Origin: Ministeria vibrans ATCC 50519
Taxonomy: Eukaryota > Protista > Filasterea
Direction of reading: 5' to 3'
Length of the DNA: 42,793 bases
Assembly (NCBI GenBank): GCA_943704425.1
Contig: CALSCP010000159.1
Coordinates: 1 to 42,793, forward strand
Positions 1-42,791 of the stretch are shown here, piece by piece. Each line of letters begins with the position of its first letter. Within the stretch, counting starts at the first letter, position 1. A program made the translations under genes and the position numbers. The notes under the pieces are model-generated. The model did not search any database. It was given only the letters and a program-made list of their open reading frames with translations, and was not told where the DNA came from.

Positions 1-57
<57 letters not shown>

Positions 58-117
58 CAAAGTGATAGAGAGAGAGAGAGAGACAAAGCGATAGAGAGAG
101 AGAGAGAGAGAGAGAGT

Positions 118-822
118 CTAGTGTGAGCACTCGATGGAACTGATGATCAAGCGGGCTATTCGTGTCTGTACGGTGTGGGCGGCACTGTCGGCGACAAAGA
201 GCTGCGATGCATTTGCCGGATTCAAAACCAGATTTTCGGGGGACTGAAGGCCTGCGTCTGCAACGACAGTGAGGGCGAAGGTGCGGCTGTCCCATAGCCC
301 AATGCGACTACGGTCACGATCGGCAAAGTACAGATGATGGGAGTTGCCGCTGGGGCTGACAGTGATGGACAGTCCTGTCGGATAGGTGAGAAAAGTGCCG
401 GTTACGACCGAGCTGATGATCCCCGCTGCACGATCGATGCGTCGGATACGCGAACTTGTTGAATCGGATACGTAGAAGGACTGCGCGTCGGGCGCCATCA
501 CTAGTGTGTAGGGTAATGCGAGCCTGAAATTCAAAAAAAAAAACAAAATTCAAATTTTCTCATGTCAATCAATGACATGCTTATTGCGGAAAAGAGTGAC
601 ATCGCGAAGTGACAGAGCAATGTTCATGGGTTAGGAGCCAGGGACAGGGGGGACACAAGTGGCATCAGCCTACCCAGAAGCAGTGGCGGCACCACCATCG
701 CCGGTGTAGGCTGGGATTCCATTTCCAGCTGCCGTTGAAATCGTTCCAAAGCTAATGTCAGCGTCAACGACATTAAAGACTGCTGCTACAAGTCCCACAG
801 CTATGGTGCAAACACGAAACAT
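118..822 (-). CDS. Secreted NHL-repeat (beta-propeller) protein, 5' part; probably continues past the window start
   Basis: ATG at 822 opens MFRVCTIAVGLVAAVFNVVDA (signal-peptide-like), then ISTAAGNGIPAYTGDGGAATASG. GT-AG intron 673..524. Exon 2 LALPYTLVMAPDAQSFYVSDSTSSRIRRID...PTGL...LYFADRDRSRIG...LFVADSAAHT shows typical NHL repeats. Likely donor near 171, ahead of a (GA)n intron. Confidence 0.8.
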
Positions 823-1019
823 TTTCGATCAAAATAATTAATAGTTTTTAAGATCCATGAAGTTTATTTTGACTTGAATTGATTACGTCGCCAATGCTTT
901 CTTTCGCGGTCACCTTATTCTGCCTCGGCAGTTTATTTCTTAATCGTTTTGGTTCGTCCAACTACCAACTTCGTCCCACGACGACTGCTTGGGGTCGCGG
1001 GTGTACAGCACGCACATGA

Positions 1020-1672
1020 GGACGAACCGAAATGATTAAGAATTCTGAAAACCCTCACTTCACTAAGTCCTTTGAGGTACACCGCCCCTCCCCGTGTCCT
1101 CCGCAGCGCCCTCTCCGATACCAGCGGCCGCTCGCCGTTGTCTCGGCCGCCCTTGTTGTGTTTCCACGTCGATTTGATGTGTGTTTTCTTTTCCTCCATT
1201 GCATTTTCTCGCGTTTTGCGCTCTCTCCAAGCCTTATCGGTCGCAAGTCTGTGGATCGCGGGATGGGGGGTTTTCAGACGATTCTCTTGCCTCTCGACTG
1301 GACAAACGTTGATGTGTTTTTTTTCATTATTATTTTTTGTGTTTTCGACACACACTCGAACAACCAAACTTACTCTTCCTCCTTTGCCATCTCCACCTCC
1401 ACCTCCACCTCCACCTCCACCTCCCTCTGTTCTCCTTCTAGGTTGTGTACTACTTTGAGGAGCTGCAGGAGCTCCTGTTCCGCGTCTACGATGTGGACAG
1501 TCCCAAGGCGAACCTGAGCAAGCAGGACTTTGTGGGCGAGCTCACCTGCCACTTGGGTGAGATTGTGGGCTCGCCCGGACAGAAGTTGAGTCGCCCCTTG
1601 GCCAATTCGGCGGCTGGTGGACGCAAGAATGGTTCTATTACAGTTTCGGCCGAAGAAATGACCGACATGAAA
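1020..1672 (+). pseudogene. Copine (CPNE-family) C2A-domain fragment, two exons, truncated at both ends
   Basis: GRTEMIKNSENPHFTKSFE | intron 1077-1441 (gtac...ctag) | VVYYFEELQELLFRVYDVDSPKANLSKQDFVGELTCHLGEIVGSPG...GSITVSAEEMTDMK | gtgagg. Matches copine C2A. In-frame TGA at 1017-1019 upstream; no C2B or vWA exons downstream. Confidence 0.75.
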
Positions 1673-1725
1673 GTGAGGGGGAGAGAGAATAGCGTTGAAA
1701 GAGTTTATTTCCCTTGGGTTCACAA

Positions 1726-2600
1726 TCAAGTATCCTCTGTGGAGGATCCGGCAAGATAGTCGTTGAGAAGGACTTCGATTTCAGCAGGCGAGAGAGGTGC
1801 TGTTCCGTCATAACTCATAAGCGACCGATGATCAGTTGGCGGGTTGGCCATGCAGCCGTCGGTGCCATGGTCCACATCATTGCCGGGCTTCTGCGCATCA
1901 AAAAACTCGTACAGAGACACAAAGTCCTCGCCAAAGATTTTCTTCTCTTCCATCTCGTCGTAGTCCGCCGCTGACGAGTCGGGGACGGACTTGCTATCGG
2001 TCGTCTTAGTCTTCTTATGCGGCGTGTGCGACACACTCTCGTCGCTGTTGTCACTGCCACGACAGCGCTTGGTGGACGACGTTTTCGTCTGTGAGACGAC
2101 ACCAGCCGTAGCGTCGGGGTTGAAGACGGGGTATATAAAATCCGAGAGCGGTTGGGAGTCGGCGGCCGGCTTCATGAGGTCCCCGTCACGCTCCGAGAGC
2201 GGTTGGGAGTCGGCGGCCGGCTTCATGAGGTCCCCGTCACGCTCCGAGAGAGGCAGCTCAGCGTCGTCGTCTGGGTGGCGCTCGTTGCGTGTTCCGTGAA
2301 CCTCCCCCAAATGATTAAGCAATTCTTTGTGGGTGCCATGCTTGGTGTTGCCATGCTTGGAGCCGCACTCACAGCACTCCAGGTTGCTGTCTTTGTGGCA
2401 ACCTTTCACAATTTTGTGCTTGTTCCGCAGGTGATCGACGAAGCGGCTGTATCTAAAGGTCGTTGTGAGTCGCAGGTCGAGCAAAAAACTGTATTAATTA
2501 TAATGTACCTGTCAAAGATACTCGAGCAACACTTGTATATAATCACTTGTGGATCTGACTGGGAGGTTCCAGTAAGATCACGAACATGCTTAGCGGGCAT
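1726..2600 (-). CDS. C2H2 zinc-finger protein, paralog 1 (~272 aa; 2 fingers, the first with an atypical CC spacing; acidic C-terminus)
   Basis: Exons 2600-2509 and 2452-1726, GT-AG intron 2508-2453. YKCCSSIFDRYSRFVDHLRNKH and LECCECGSKH...THKELLNHLGEVH. Clear homolog of 5016-6186. Confidence 0.75.
2142..2250. repeat. 51-bp in-frame tandem duplication (SERDGDLMKPAADSQPL x2)
   Basis: ccgagagcggttgggagtcggcggccggcttcatgaggtccccgtcacgct occurs twice back to back; single in paralog 2. Confidence 0.9.
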
Positions 2601-3856
2601 GCGACAGCAGACGAAGACAACGTCCTTGAGGCAACACCTCCACTGGGAGAAGGCAAGCGGGAAAAAAAAGGGAAAAAAAGTGGAAATGAGCCTTCCATCG
2701 ACGATCCGCGTACTGGTGCGGGAATGGAGCATGCGCCATAATGCGTGTGCCGCAGTGGGTGTAGGGTATTTGGGAGGCAAACCCTTTCTTTTTGAGGCTC
2801 AAAAAAACTTCTTTTTCTTTTTTCCCTCTTAGATTGAATAATTTTGCAAGTGCACTCATCATATGAATACAACGCGAAGGAGCGCGTTATGGATTGGGAC
2901 GCAAGACCACACTTAGAGTGGCACTCTAGGGGTGACAATAATGGGCAGTGTTGACGTGCTGCAGCGGGTNNNNNNNNNNNNNNNNNNNNNNNNNNNNNNN
3001 NNNNNNNNNNNNNNNNNNNNNNNNNNNNNNNNNNNNNNNNNNNNNNNNNNNNNNNNNNNNNNNNNNNNNNNNNNNNNNNNNNNNNNNNNNNNNNNNNNNN
3101 NNNNNNNNNNNNNNNNNNNNNNNNNNNNNNNNNNNNNNNNNNNNNNNNNNNNNNNNNNNNNNNNNNNNNNNNNNNNNNNNNNNNNNNNNNNNNNNNNNNN
3201 NNNNNNNNNNNNNNNNNNNNNNNNNNNNNNNNNNNNNNNNNNNNNNNNNNNNNNNNNNNNNNNNNNNNNNNNNNNNNNNNNNNNNNNNNNNNNNNNNNNN
3301 NNNNNNNNNNNNNNNNNNNNNNNNNNNNNNNNNNNNNNNNNNNNNNNNNNNNNNNNNNNNNNNNNNNNNNNNNNNNNNNNNNNNNNNNNNNNNNNNNNNN
3401 NNNNNNNNNNNNNNNNNNNNNNNNNNNNNNNNNNNNNNNNNNNNNNNNNNNNNNNNNNNNNNNNNNNNNNNNNNNNNNNNNNNNNNNNNNNNNNNNNGTC
3501 GTTGAGCTTTTGGTGGAAGAAGGTGGGATTCTTGGTGGGGGACGACATGGTGACAAAGGGCGTATGTGTGTGGCTATACGCGCGTGGGCGGCGGCGGCGG
3601 CGGCGGGGAACTGGAATGTCTGGAAACGTGAACGGGAAATTGACTGATCAATGAGCAATCCGGATTTTATTCTGGAAGTAGAATGGATGAACTTCCCACT
3701 ACCTTCTCGGCCTCCCTCTGCCTTTCGAATGGATGTACGCTTTTGAAAGGGTAAAAAGGAACGGTTCTGACGGCTTCCCCAGAGAGAACTCAAAGAAAGG
3801 GTCAGCAGGAGAGCGCGATTTGCGTTTCGTCAATCGACGCGCAATAATGTGTGTGT

Positions 3857-3891
<35 letters not shown>

Positions 3892-5015
3892 TTAGCTTAC
3901 AAAAGTGCGACGGACCAGAGTCTGCAAAGGCCGCTGATCCATCGTCCATCGATCGAGTCGTTTGCAACGAAGAGGATCGCTAGTTCGCTACGATGTGTCG
4001 ATGTCGAACAGTACGAAGTTGCTCTCCCTCAACATCCTTGGGGGCTGATCATCATCAGTATTACACTCTCGAGCGATTAACCCTTTGCGAATTGCGACCA
4101 GTTTTCTTTCCGTCGATGATTTTTGCCGCCGATGGCTCTCACCTCTTCGACAGTTCGACTTGGGTCAATGCTCTTCTGTCGTGAATCGTGATGATGCCCT
4201 CTATTTTGCTGTGCTTGTTCGGCTAGACTGCCCTGGCCCAGCGACTCCCTTCCCGACTGCACAACTGTTGGGACGCCACTCTGGCGCTCGTCGTCGTCGA
4301 CCCCACTGGACAGACGCCGCCATTGACATGTTTCAGGACGAAATAAGCGAGTCGGAGGGTGAGCGCTGGTCACGTCACTTTGGAGTTACTTTGCACTCCC
4401 TTTGCACGTATACATTGCGCATCTGGCGGGCCTTGGGTCCGCTCGCTCGCGAGCGTGCCACGGCCGAGTGACGCGAGGGACGTGTGCAGGTCAATGCCGA
4501 TATAAAAGCGGCAAAGGAAGTGTACGGCAGCGAGCTCCCTGTTCACCAACTTAGCAAGCATTCCAACAGTGTCCAATGTTGAGGACCCCGAGGAACTCAA
4601 CATTCTCCAGAGTTGCTTGATAGTGACCAAGGTGGACAGTCAGTGTCTCATGAGCGTTGGCATCCAGTTCTTCCTTTCCCTTTTGAGGGCCCTCCGGCGC
4701 ATTAAGCGTGAGGGGCGCCGCAATGGTGCACCGAGGAGTGTACAGGGTCTACGTGTGCGATGTATCCTGAGTGGGCCTCATAAGCTGCTTGAGTATGTGT
4801 TAAACGTCTGAATACAATCGTAAAGTTCATGTCTCGGTCTACCTGTGCCTCCGTACATTGTTTCTCATGGGTGTATCAGTGGGTTTCATGGGCTTCTTTT
4901 GGGACATTCTCTTCTAGAAGTCTACGGCGGAAGTATTGCGCTGCTCTTTGTTATTAATAATGTTAAATGCAGATTACGTATTACTGTTTATTTCCCTTGG
5001 GTTCACAATCAAGTA

Positions 5016-6186
5016 TTATAATTCCATGTCGACGTCGAAGATTTTGATGTCGGGCATGTTAACACGGTTGCCAACATCTAACAGAACCTCTGTGGAGGAT
5101 CCGGCAAGATAGTCGTCGAGAAGGACTTCGGTTTCAGCAGGCGAGGGAGGTGCTGTTCCGTCATAACTCATAAGCGACAGATGATCAGTTGGCGGGTTGG
5201 TCATGCACTCGTCGGTGCCATGGTTCACACCATGGCCGGGCTCCTGCGCACCAAAAAACTCGTACAGAGACACAAAGTCCTTGCCAAAGATTTTCTTCTC
5301 TTCCATCTCGTCGTAGTCCGCCGCTGACGAGCCGGGGACGAATTCGAAAGAGAACATGGACAGCTCGTGCGACGACTTGCTGTCGGTCGTCTTAGTCTTC
5401 TTAGGCGGCGTGTGCGGCACATAGTCGTCGCTGTTGTCACTGTCAACCATCTTGCGACAGCGCTTGGTGGGTGATTTTTTCAGCTGTGGGACGACACCGG
5501 CGCTAGCGTCGCGGTCAACACGCGGGTTCTTGGGCGGGCGGCCACGGGGGCGCTTGGGGGCGGGCATAGGCTCAGCAGCCATGGCAGCAGCACACTGCTC
5601 GTTGTAGATGGGGGACAATGAGGTGTAGGAGGAGATGCTGCTGCAGGGCGATGGAGCTTGGCTCCACTCGGAGTCGGAGAATAATTGCTGGCTACTCGCA
5701 GGTGAAGAGGGCACCAGAACGGCCGGGCTGTCCGCTGCCGTAGCGCTCTTCCTAGCAGCGCTCTCGTCCTCACCCAGCAACTCAAACTGCTTCATGAGGT
5801 CCCAGTCACGCTCCGAGACAGGCAACTCAGCGGCGTCGTCTGGGTGGCGCTCGTTCGGTTTGATCAGACGTGTTCCGTGTTCCTCCACCAAATGATCAAG
5901 CAGTTCGCGGTGGGTGTTACGCGGTGCGTCGCACAGACAGCACTCCAGGTTGTGTTGTTTGTGGCAGCCTCTCACAATATCGTGAACGTCCCGCAGGTGA
6001 TCGTGGATGCGGATGAACCTAAAGGTCGTTGTGAGTCGCAGGTCGAGCAAAAAATAATATAATAATGTTGTCTAGCTTTTACCTGTCAAAGCGACACGGA
6101 GGTGAGCACTCGTTGCACTCGTACATGGTCACGTGTGCGTGCGTCTTGGAGGCTCCGGTAAGGCGACGGGCACGCACAGCGGGCAT
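5016..6186 (-). CDS. C2H2 zinc-finger + AT-hook protein, paralog 2 (~368 aa), putative transcription/chromatin factor
   Basis: Exons 6186-6083 and 6018-5016. YECNECSPPCRFDRFIRIHDHLRDVH, LECCLCDAPRNTHRELLDHLVEEH, AT-hook PKRPRGRPPK, basic NLS-like patches, acidic/hydrophobic C-terminus. Confidence 0.8.
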
Positions 6187-8568
6187 GCGATAGCAGCAGA
6201 TGTCAAAGTGTTTGAGAAGCCACTGGAGAAAAGCAAGCGGAAAAAAAAAGTGGAAATGAGCCATCCGTCGACGATCCGCGTTGCTGCGGCTGGCGCTACT
6301 GGTGAGGAAATCAGGGCATACGTGTACCGCGGTGCAGTGTGGGGTATTTGGGAGGGAAAGTTTTTTTGCAGGTCAAAAAAAAAAAAAAAGCAACCCTCCA
6401 AAAAAATTTTTTTTCCCTCCTAAATTTTGCGAGTGAGCTCATACGAATACAACGTGAAGGAGCACGCCATGGATTGGGGCGCAAGACGACACTCTATTGG
6501 TGACAATGGGCAGTGGCGATGTGCTGCAGCGGGTGTAGGGGCTGCAAAGTGTGTTTGGGAAACAATTTGGTCGTCAAAAATTTGAGGGTCGCGTTGTGTC
6601 ATCCCCACGAGCCGAGGTTCGGGGAGATGTTTCGGCCGTGAGATAGTGCATTGGGTCACTGTAGCGTAGCCGGCGGCGAGATGGAAGCGGTATTGGGAGA
6701 GAACGAGACTTTGAAAGTTTGAAGGTTGAATATGTGTTTTTTTTTTTGCCGTGAGACTCAGCGCAAAGACGAAGGGAGAGGCCGCCTTACCACTTTGATG
6801 GTGTAGTCGGACACACGGCCTGGGGATGTCTTTGCGTGGCGGCGGAAGGCGTCGTGGATCTCCGATTCGGCGACATATGTGTTTTTCAGGGAGCGCTTTG
6901 TTGAGTTGCGCAAATCGCACAGTTGTTGGCTGAAGACAGTGGGGTTCTCGGTGAGGGACGACATGATAGCAAAGAGTGTATGTGTATGCGTGTGTGCGTG
7001 CGGCGGCGGCGGCGGTGGTGGGAGGGATCACACCAGAGCAACAGTGGAAATTGACTGAATTAATTATTCATTATTCACAGAAAGCCAAATTAATAATAAT
7101 AATAATTGTAGGAAAAACAACACTGCGGGAATTTTTCTCAGCTCTCCTCCGTCTCTCTCTGTCTTTCAGATGGATGTACGCTTCCGAAAGGGTAAAGCAG
7201 AATGTGTTTGACGGTTCCCCCGCGAAGAATTCGAAGAAAGAGAAGGCAAGAAGGCGCATATGGCGTTTCGACAGTCGACGGGCGACGCTATTTTCTCGTA
7301 TCATATTCAACTTTTTGAGGGTTAATCGATCACGATTCAAACAGCACGCACAACCGGAGCGCGCGGCATATGTCCATATCCGCATTAGTGATTAGTGAAT
7401 AGTGATCTGTGATACGTTACAACGAGGAGAGTCAGGAGACTGGATACACCGCTGAATTCTTCCAATGAAACTCACTGTTTTTCCTTGTCGATTTTTTTTA
7501 ACTGTGAACTTTTTATAGGTCGATGACATTTCAATTTCACAATTTTTGAGGGCTGAATTTGCGATCCACAAAATTGTACTATTGTTGTAATTTGAGAATT
7601 GAGACTATGTACCAGTTTGTGAGTCACTTAGAGTCAGTGCTGTGCGTTGAGCGCGATAACTGGCTCTTGGGGGGTTCTTATAATGTTTGTTTCAAAAGCT
7701 AATCACCGCGTCTCCACGATCTTTCATCGCAGCACCCACACGAATCTTTACCCTTTAGCATTAGCAGCATGCATGTATACGTGCCATAAAGATCACACGC
7801 GAGATCAGAAGCTGTCCCCTGAGACGATGTTTCCGCCAACTCCCGTGCAACACCATTCCCCGAATGGTCCGAGCACGTTGATCGTGCCCGCGGTAGAAGC
7901 TCCCTCCCGCGTTGCTGTATTGCATGTGTCTTATCCCTTGCCAGACTGACCTGGCAGCTGGACGGCACCCTCCAATTCCAAGCACAGTCAGATGCCACTG
8001 ACTAAGCGCCTACACCCCTCTCCACGTCCAAGACGACCTTTCCCTCGTATCGAGCATCCCAACTCATCATCATACAACTCTGTGCACCACAACAACACTG
8101 TCTGGCGCAGTCCACTCGACGTCCGCATCGTATACATCGTATACAATAGGCCGCAGACGACCCCCCCCCTCCCCNNNNNNNNNNAGAGACCGTGGCGCTC
8201 CACAAAATTGTCCGTTGAGACCATCTCGATGACACCTGCGTGACACGCTACAAGGACTTCTTCGCGTACAGTGCATCCAGGGCCAATTGTTCACTCACCA
8301 CCACCGTGAACGCCAATGGCTCTCACGCACGCACGCACCCGTGGTCATGTTGTACGCGGTGGGCGACGCCGCAGTGCACAGTACACACCGCTGATCACTC
8401 TCTCCATTTTTCTTTGCGTAATTGTGTTTTAAACGCTGCTGCGCCAAATCATCGAGCGGACAGAGTGTGGTTGAGACAGCAGCTTGCCAAGGGAGCGCGT
8501 TCTTCTTTTTCGTACAATATCATATGCATCACACTCAGTATGTACAACACCAATGCAAGTCGACAATC

Positions 8569-11217: not shown

Positions 11218-13806
<2,589 letters not shown>

Positions 13807-17873: not shown

Positions 17874-17976
<103 letters not shown>

Positions 17977-17982
17977 NNNNNN

Positions 17983-18075
<93 letters not shown>

Positions 18076-39566: not shown

Positions 39567-39877
39567 AGTGCTATGACTTTTTATTTTGGGAGTGTCAGAT
39601 GTGTAGACTGTAATCGTACTTCGTACTCAATGTCAAAACAAGACAATATACAAAACGAATAAGTTTTAATAATAATACGAAAATATATAGAGAATCGAGA
39701 GCTGTACTTGAGCTGTACTCCGTCTCCTACGGAGTAGTCTGTTATAACATATCTGGTGTGTGTGTATGTGTGTGTGTGTGTGTATGTATGTATGTGTGTA
39801 TGTGTATGTGTGTGTATGTGTGTATGTGTATGTGTGTGTATGTGTGTGTATGTGTGTATGTATGTGTGTGTATGTGT

Positions 39878-39937
<60 letters not shown>

Positions 39938-40101
39938 CTGTGTGTGTGTGTGTGNNNNNNNNNNGGGGGGGGGGGGGGGGGGGGGGGTCTACTGTGATGA
40001 CTTTTGTTTTTTTAGGTTTTGGTGAGATCGTGGTGAGATGTATTGATGAGTCGAATATCGAATTTTGTTATTCTTTTTTGTTCCTTACTATATATAATTG
40101 T

Positions 40102-42613: not shown

Positions 42614-42672
42614 GTATGCATTTTCTCCTTCAGATTTTTTGTCTGACACACACACACATACATACATACATA

Positions 42673-42791
<119 letters not shown>

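Follow-up and report, generated by a model that had tools for sequence, protein, structure and literature searches.

The closest described systems to the locus analyzed here are KRAB-ZNF and PRDM9 of animals, which carry long tandem arrays of zinc fingers and in which positive selection is focused on helix positions -1, 2, 3, and 6. Vertebrate PATZ1, which combines C2H2 fingers and an AT-hook, provides a lead rather than a test. Acidic activation-domain tails conserve their composition while their sequence is free to vary, and they normally gather silent differences too. We compared these systems with a tandem pair of C2H2-type zinc-finger genes, copy A and copy B, both on the minus strand of contig CALSCP010000159.1 of the marine protist Ministeria vibrans ATCC 50519 (C159; 42,793 nucleotides [nt], analyzed whole as the window), which belongs to a 29.7-Mb assembly of 2860 contigs. 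A sequence-only reading of the window had proposed that strong diversifying selection drives the two copies apart. Our results lead us to favor, with some reserve, a young tandem pair shaped by near-neutral protein change and gene conversion; the zinc-finger/AT-hook family to which it belongs is apparently an orphan. Events of this sort are ordinary, and the pair serves as a cautionary case: codon tallies between two paralogs mimicked strong positive selection, but substitution-level and likelihood tests give a ratio of nonsynonymous to synonymous divergence (dN/dS) of 1. A corrected three-exon gene model and a five-member family (copies A and B and three distant paralogs, C, D, and E) also bring to light a family of DNA-binding type, apparently an orphan, whose N-terminal domain is conserved.

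The pair resembles KRAB-ZNF and PRDM9 in its C2H2-type fingers, tandem duplication, rapid protein divergence, and lineage-restricted birth and death of copies. In contrast to those systems, there are two fingers here, Pfam finds no KRAB or SET domain, the contact positions are almost unchanged, and the whole-gene dN/dS is 1.0. The sole local excess of replacements is in the acidic C-terminal tail, not in the fingers. Finger-1 positions -1, 3, and 6 are Arg, Arg, and Asp in both copies, as the sequence-only reading had observed, and the contact positions of finger 2 differ only at +2 (conservatively) and +6. Base-contacting positions show no concentration of change.

Both copies change their protein sequence at about the neutral rate. 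Searches, structure predictions, and dN/dS blocks were run exon by exon; finger 1 of copies A and B and of paralog C spans an intron, and the exons were left unjoined. Over 220 securely aligned codons, the Nei-Gojobori 1986 method (NG86) gives a dS of 0.147 and a dN of 0.144 (dN/dS 0.98), and maximum likelihood (ML) gives a dN/dS of 1.17-1.27 (p 0.40-0.60 versus 1). With new coding segments added (249 codons), the NG86 values are dS 0.184, dN 0.161, and dN/dS 0.88, and an ML model with separate divergence for nine blocks gives 1.00 (p=0.998 versus 1). Differences are evenly spread across codon positions (33/29/25 over the 220 codons). The ratio thus lies between 0.88 and 1.27 and is never significantly off 1 (p 0.40-0.998), and the excess is confined to one block picked post hoc. 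Strong diversifying selection, as claimed, is not what these values describe; the claim had been staked on a whole-gene dN/dS significantly above 1, and the ratio found is not, which counts against it. Exon 0, the upstream exon described below, is under purifying selection (A versus B, dN/dS 0.30 over 17 readable codons).

How, then, did the pair come to look so strongly selected? The tallies themselves were reproduced. Across the ungapped 253 nt of the tail block, the copies differ at 14 sites that affect 13 codons; no change is synonymous, and the distribution over codon positions is 6/7/1. Among the 32 ungapped codons that come first in the last exon, 14 are replaced and 1 is silent, with the split junction codon (Arg in both copies) adding one further silent codon, and the first 23 codons after the ATG assigned by the sequence-only reading include 13 replaced and 1 silent. 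Such tallies mislead because silent-type changes are hidden inside replaced codons: in the 23-codon N-terminal block, 7 of the 13 replaced codons differ at position 3 too. Counted by substitutions, this block has 7 silent (Sd) and 15 replacement (Nd) differences, with dS 0.59, dN 0.34, and dN/dS 0.58. Divergence almost only by amino-acid-changing substitutions therefore describes the C-terminal block fairly and the opening 29 codons of the last exon weakly, but not the rest. We also considered coding in another frame or on the opposite strand as the source of the 14:0 pattern and rejected it after scoring six frames; only the frame originally assigned is stop-free, and in none of the others are the differences mostly silent.

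Divergence between the copies is mosaic. Per-block dS ranges from 0.009 to 0.76, and silent divergence is much lower in the tail than in the rest of the gene (Fisher p = 6e-6 to 9e-5). Next to the tail, 29 nt of 3' untranslated region (UTR) are 100% identical between the copies; noncoding DNA elsewhere is 74% identical. Because silent divergence differs between blocks, this mosaic suggests patchy gene conversion, and the near-zero silent divergence of the tail points to conversion that was recent. In tandem paralogs that undergo gene conversion, near-identical stretches likewise give way abruptly to ~75%-identical ones, at silent sites and in the adjoining UTR too, but plain conversion with neutral drift does not predict a converted-looking tail that holds replacements only. 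The last 36 nt of intron 1 are also identical in the two copies (2453-2488 and 6019-6054), as reported before, and may mark a short tract of conversion or an element that acts in splicing or regulation. This 36-nt island is flanked by ~75%-identical exon sequence, and it is kept with one mismatch in a relic on contig C2018, described below.

In the history we favor, tandem duplication of a unit of ~2.1-2.3 kb, holding a promoter, three coding exons, and a poly(A) signal, would have given two copies of one family member. Amino acids would since have drifted about neutrally outside a few motif residues, with selection holding the frames open. Short gene-conversion tracts would have reset the acidic tail and 3' UTR, the block after finger 2, and the intron end, leaving the mosaic. 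Copy B would represent the ancestral architecture, and copy A would be a remodeled derivative. The 14:0 pattern of the tail would then most likely be a small-sample extreme in a recently converted tract, and it is no proof of an arms race.

Several observations weigh against this account. In the tail, 0 of 14 differences are silent, and a likelihood-ratio test (LRT) gives p=0.007 with kappa fixed at 2.8 and p=0.002-0.003 with kappa free. A parametric neutral simulation, scoring the probability of at most 0.5 silent differences given about 14 differences, gives 0.008-0.02. The fit improves when the tail and the rest each have their own ratio (two-ratio model, p=0.004 versus a single ratio), with a partition chosen post hoc. 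The first 29 codons of the last exon, the finger-1 helix block, have a dN/dS of 3.6-4.4 (p=0.09), and the omnibus heterogeneity test of nine ratios versus one is borderline (p=0.051). In addition, the putative gene conversion was read from two sequences only.

On this evidence, one could argue that selection diversifies the acidic C-terminal module, or differentiates the paralogs there, and perhaps acts on the finger region as well. Conversion would homogenize the silent sites while amino acid differences were favored or protected, and the average of 1 would hide a mixture of sites. The effectively infinite dN/dS of the tail, the two-ratio model, and the finger-1 helix block all agree with such selection, as do the open frames, and the conservation of zinc ligands and motif residues means that the remaining sites must average slightly above 1. 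However, the block was picked after seeing the data, and correction for the nine blocks raises its p value to ~0.06-0.18 (Bonferroni, ~0.06 for the LRT and 0.07-0.18 for the simulation), with the omnibus test borderline as given above. Change is not concentrated at the base-contact positions, charge changes in the tail compensate as expected for a disordered acidic segment, and the changes are not polarized, as searches outside this genome returned no outgroup. We regard this kind of selection as a possibility on the unlikely side. It would be an improbable further step to suppose that the acidic module is truly under diversifying selection and that the family takes part in a conflict or recognition system (transposon control, virus defense, or self-recognition) through protein-protein contacts rather than DNA-reading residues.

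The tail is best regarded as a suggestive local anomaly, an unexplained excess of replacements. Its net charge is -15 in one copy and -14 in the other, although 9 of the 13 changes alter charge. Such compensation fits a compositional rather than a positional constraint, as expected in the turnover of a disordered acidic segment. With 17-19 acidic residues among 84, interspersed with bulky hydrophobics, and its net charge kept despite nine charge-changing replacements, the predicted tail resembles an acidic activation domain, but the silent differences that such tails normally gather are missing from it. If the tail signal is real, the pair would be an unusual case of selection targeting a tail used for activation or interaction instead of the contact residues of the fingers.

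Could the two copies be one gene assembled twice? Comparison of the window with itself delimits homologous units at ~1705-3850 (A) and 4988-7300 (B), in which 1734-1987/5087-5340 is 94.5% identical and the remaining aligned pieces are 76-82% identical. An artifact, whether uncollapsed haplotypes or a scaffolding error at the run of N within unit A, might be suspected from that gap, from the fragmentation of the assembly, and from the dispersed repeats between the units. However, unit homology is bounded on both sides by unrelated sequence, at 1705/4988 on the 3' side and ~3850/7300 on the 5' side, with 45-46% identity past these limits. Noncoding divergence is ~26% with many indels, far beyond allelic levels, the gap flanks are collinear with copy B, and no further near-identical copy is found elsewhere in the assembly. 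We therefore rejected an artifact, which now seems very improbable.

The sequence-only reading had modeled each gene with two exons. Its exons and intron were placed correctly (Table 1), but it missed an upstream coding exon of 58 codons, which we call exon 0. A 58-codon frame of copy B (6964-6791) runs up to a phase-0 GTAAGG donor, and a polypyrimidine tract with a CAG acceptor at 6223 opens a frame that runs 12 codons into the presumed start Met. The same arrangement, an exon-0-like frame leading to a phase-0 donor and then an AG/TGG acceptor followed by 10-14 in-frame codons and Met-Pro, is found in copy B, copy A, and the paralogs on contigs C13, C837, and C945, and the exon-0 peptides can be aligned across all five. 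Because exon 0 belongs to the gene, the N gap at 2970-3497 falls inside copy A. The missing piece corresponds to 378 nt in copy B, versus 528 N in the assembly. The gap hides both continuity and frame, but a join across it is plausible because the sequence on either side runs collinear with copy B, with order and orientation unchanged (2969 aligns near 6534, and 3498-3548 with 6914-6964). The earlier statement that both open reading frames (ORFs) stay open thus holds for the readable exons of copy A, which have no internal stop and keep their frames through many indels, but copy A can be verified only outside the gap, which removes all but the first 17 codons of exon 0. In its readable part, copy A has preserved both its splice sites and its poly(A) signal; the exon-0 donor lies under the gap.

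The zinc-ligand His residues are kept in both copies, as had been proposed, and so is the Cys pair of finger 2. The classical spacing, Cys-x2-4-Cys-x12-His-x3-5-His, is exact in copy B finger 2 and in both fingers of paralogs C and D, and finger 1 of copy B and paralog E has x14. Copy A misses this spacing, with adjacent Cys residues in finger 1 and x17 in finger 2. An AT-hook core (Arg-Gly-Arg-Pro with basic flanks) is present in copy B and in paralogs C and E, and absent from copy A and paralog D; Pfam gives no AT_hook match. Pfam likewise places no zf-C2H2 match above the gathering score, with no match for copies A and B and paralog C and sub-threshold zf-C2H2 and zf-C2H2_4 matches for paralogs D and E (E values 0.026-0.17; 13-16 bits versus cut-offs of 25-27). 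Single fingers seldom reach Pfam cut-offs.

AlphaFold models the first 77 last-exon residues of copy B with a beta hairpin and helix over finger 2, at moderate confidence (predicted local distance difference test [pLDDT] 72-77, mean 66). Paralog D, in which finger 1 lies within one exon, was used as a stand-in for finger 1, and its single-sequence model is poor (pLDDT 46). A Foldseek search with the copy B model returned nothing at E<=0.001, and the weak rows are mostly C2H2 fingers (CTCF, Kaiso, BCL11A, and ZNF406). Sub-threshold sequence matches in the PDB (E values 0.006-0.3) are nearly all to C2H2 proteins. In layout, the family would suit a small nuclear DNA-binding regulator. It resembles PATZ1 in having a minor-groove AT-hook and C2H2 fingers in one small, presumably nuclear protein, but no sequence relationship is detected, and in place of a BTB/POZ domain it has the family-specific N-terminal domain and an Arg-Asp-Trp-Asp-Leu motif.

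Copy B retains the family architecture, and the departures of copy A from it are numerous. Besides the finger-1 Cys spacing and the finger-2 spacer, copy A has a Trp-to-Gly change in the conserved Arg-Asp-Trp-Asp-Leu motif that is unique in the family, ~77 residues, among them the AT-hook, are missing from it, and a terminal deletion of 70 nt removes the last 23 residues. Copy A probably lacks sequence-specific DNA binding and may be drifting toward loss or toward a non-binding role. Is it already a dead or dying pseudogene, untranscribed or non-functional, with the whole pattern reflecting neutral decay beside a functional copy B? These lesions fall at family-invariant features, the 70-nt deletion shifts the frame and takes away a conserved C-terminal end, and the 51-nt duplication in the copy A coding sequence is perfect and would hence be very recent, as pseudogene decay would have it, although this duplication may instead be an assembly effect.

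Frameshifts, internal stops, and splice loss, the usual marks of a pseudogene, are not what copy A shows: its 286 readable codons contain no internal stop, intron 1 keeps its GT..AG boundaries, and the 70-nt deletion alters the frame at the very C-terminal end and nowhere else, with exon 0 and its donor site under the gap. Coding indels measure 6, 6, 6, 15, 12, 51, ~231, 9, and 33 nt, all in frame, plus the one 70-nt deletion at the extreme 3' end of copy A. Noncoding indels measure 1, 1, 3, 5, 6, 7, 8, 8, 10, and 15 nt, plus 8 nt in intron 1. Multiples of three thus make up 9/10 of the coding versus 3/11 of the noncoding indels (Fisher p=0.006; binomial p=0.0004), which indicates that the frames were under selection and argues against copy A being long dead. 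Furthermore, purifying selection on copy B beside a decaying copy A should pull the pairwise dN/dS well below 1, and the observed value is ~1. Amino acid substitutions are not asymmetric relative to the outgroup paralogs: relative-rate counts of A-unique to B-unique changes are 5:3, 2:3, and 2:4 against paralogs C, D, and E, so copy B is fast-evolving too. With its splice sites and poly(A) signal also intact, copy A has little chance of being dead or dying, and we return to near-neutral change in two open frames.

The family comprises at least five paralogs and one relic in this genome. (Labels of the form C13, C159, C402, C837, C928, C945, and C2018 denote contigs within the same assembly.) The distant paralogs on C13, C837, and C945 (L004 667-2616, L015 1237-2786, and L016 679-3170) share the ~57-residue exon-0 domain, for which Pfam gives no match, together with the AG/TGG acceptor and two fingers. 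The shared architecture consists of this N-terminal domain, two fingers of the form Cys-x2-Cys-x12(or 14)-His-x3-4-His, the Arg-Asp-Trp-Asp-Leu motif, usually one AT-hook, a long low-complexity middle, and an acidic tail. Paralog D has neither the finger-1 intron nor the AT-hook. The relic on C2018 (L008 1501-1800; G000:C2018:68459-68760) holds ~45 nt of the intron-1 end and the first 52 nt of the last exon, 92% identical to 5967-6066 and fused directly to the copy B upstream flank (window 7262-7420). It is a dead relic of copy B, evidence of birth-and-death dynamics in the family.

Neither the relic nor the distant paralogs can polarize the changes in the tail. We rejected the relic as an outgroup, since as a derivative of copy B it cannot polarize changes, and paralogs C, D, and E are too divergent in the tail. 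No relatives outside this genome were found in a word search, a profile search of 1.84 billion representative proteins, or a metagenome scan, collections from which this genome's own proteins are absent, so close relatives may be unsampled. The idea of a young, lineage-restricted tandem zinc-finger/AT-hook family has thus held up well, with at least five paralogs and a relic here and three empty searches outside. Neighbors in a protein atlas give weak zinc-finger leads only.

Table 1. Coordinates of the two copies and of the surrounding duplicated units in the window
Feature	Position	Strand	Remarks
Copy A last exon	1726-2452	-	242 codons including stop TGA (1726-1728); in-frame reference 1729-2451; open frame, GT..AG boundary, phase 2 as in copy B and paralog C
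Copy A acidic C-terminal block	1734-1986	-	84 codons; 19 acidic, 4 basic residues; 94.5% identity to 5087-5339; dS 0.009, dN 0.072
Copy A-only 51-nt tandem duplication	2141-2250	-	Perfect, 2.2 copies, in frame; Tandem Repeats Finder, 100% matches
Copy A finger 2	2296-2376	-	Cys-x2-Cys, 17 residues instead of 12, His-x4-His; 15-nt insertion unique in family
Copy A finger 1	2416-2531	-	Split by intron 1; adjacent Cys without x2 spacer, unique in family (versus paralogs C, D, and E)
Copy A intron 1	2453-2508	-	56 nt, GT..AG, phase 2; final 36 nt as in copy B
Copy A middle exon	2509-2642	-	Acceptor CAG/TGG, 14 codons, then Met (2600); polypyrimidine tract and AG, in-frame extension kept in five of five paralogs
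Copy A intron 0, readable 3' part	2643-2969	-	74% identity to copy B; 3/10 indel lengths multiples of three
N gap within copy A gene	2970-3497		Covers ~41 exon-0 codons, donor site, and 5' part of intron 0; copy B counterpart 6536-6913 (378 nt)
Copy A exon 0, first 17 codons	3498-3548	-	ATG at 3548; dN/dS 0.30 versus copy B; homologous to exon 0 of four paralogs
Copy A upstream (promoter) part of duplicated unit	3549-3850	-	76-78% identity to 6965-7300, in patches; homology stops there
Inter-unit spacer of dispersed repeats	3851-4987		Dozens of 85-100% matches on other contigs; T33 run
Copy B last exon	5016-6018	-	334 codons including stop; in-frame reference 5019-6017
Copy B acidic C-terminal block	5087-5339	-	17 acidic, 3 basic residues
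Copy B AT-hook	5520-5555	-	Basic residues around Arg-Gly-Arg-Pro core; from translations and alignment
Copy B finger 2	5877-5942	-	Cys-x2-Cys-x12-His-x4-His; hairpin and helix in model, pLDDT 72-77
Copy B finger 1	5982-6117	-	Split by intron 1; Cys-x2-Cys-x14-His-x4-His, spacing as in paralog E
Copy B intron 1	6019-6082	-	64 nt
Copy B middle exon	6083-6222	-	Acceptor CAG/TGG, 12 codons, then Met at 6186
Copy B intron 0	6223-6790	-	568 nt, phase 0, donor GTAAGG; splicing keeps the frame, as in paralogs C, D, and E
Copy B exon 0	6791-6964	-	58 codons, ATG at 6964; conserved N-terminal domain of family, from five-paralog alignment
Copy B upstream part of duplicated unit	6965-7300	-	Counterpart of copy A upstream part

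The 1.1-kb spacer between the units is made of repeats present in dozens of copies at 85-100% identity. On the minus strand it terminates in A33 (3858-3890), immediately upstream of unit A, and because of this end it suggests retroposed or transposon material, resembling a poly(A)-tailed retroelement. Pfam gives no match for the spacer ORFs, and a tRNA search of the spacer found none. Rfam over 1-8000, which includes the conserved intron end, found no structured RNA. Within the spacer, contigs C402 and C928 match 4055-4638 at 96-98% identity, an 82-nt element at 4757-4838 has at least 30 copies at 94-100%, many at contig ends, and 4836-4960 has at least 15 copies at 85-92% identity. On the other side of unit A, a plus-strand open frame at 1445-1700 with a sub-threshold, copine-like C2-domain match (E value 0.014) converges on the copy A 3' end. 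Long simple repeats of the (GA)n/(TC)n type occur at 1-116, 12730-13000, 17890-18075, 39750-39954, and 42646-42788, and several of them adjoin the scaffold's short N gaps.

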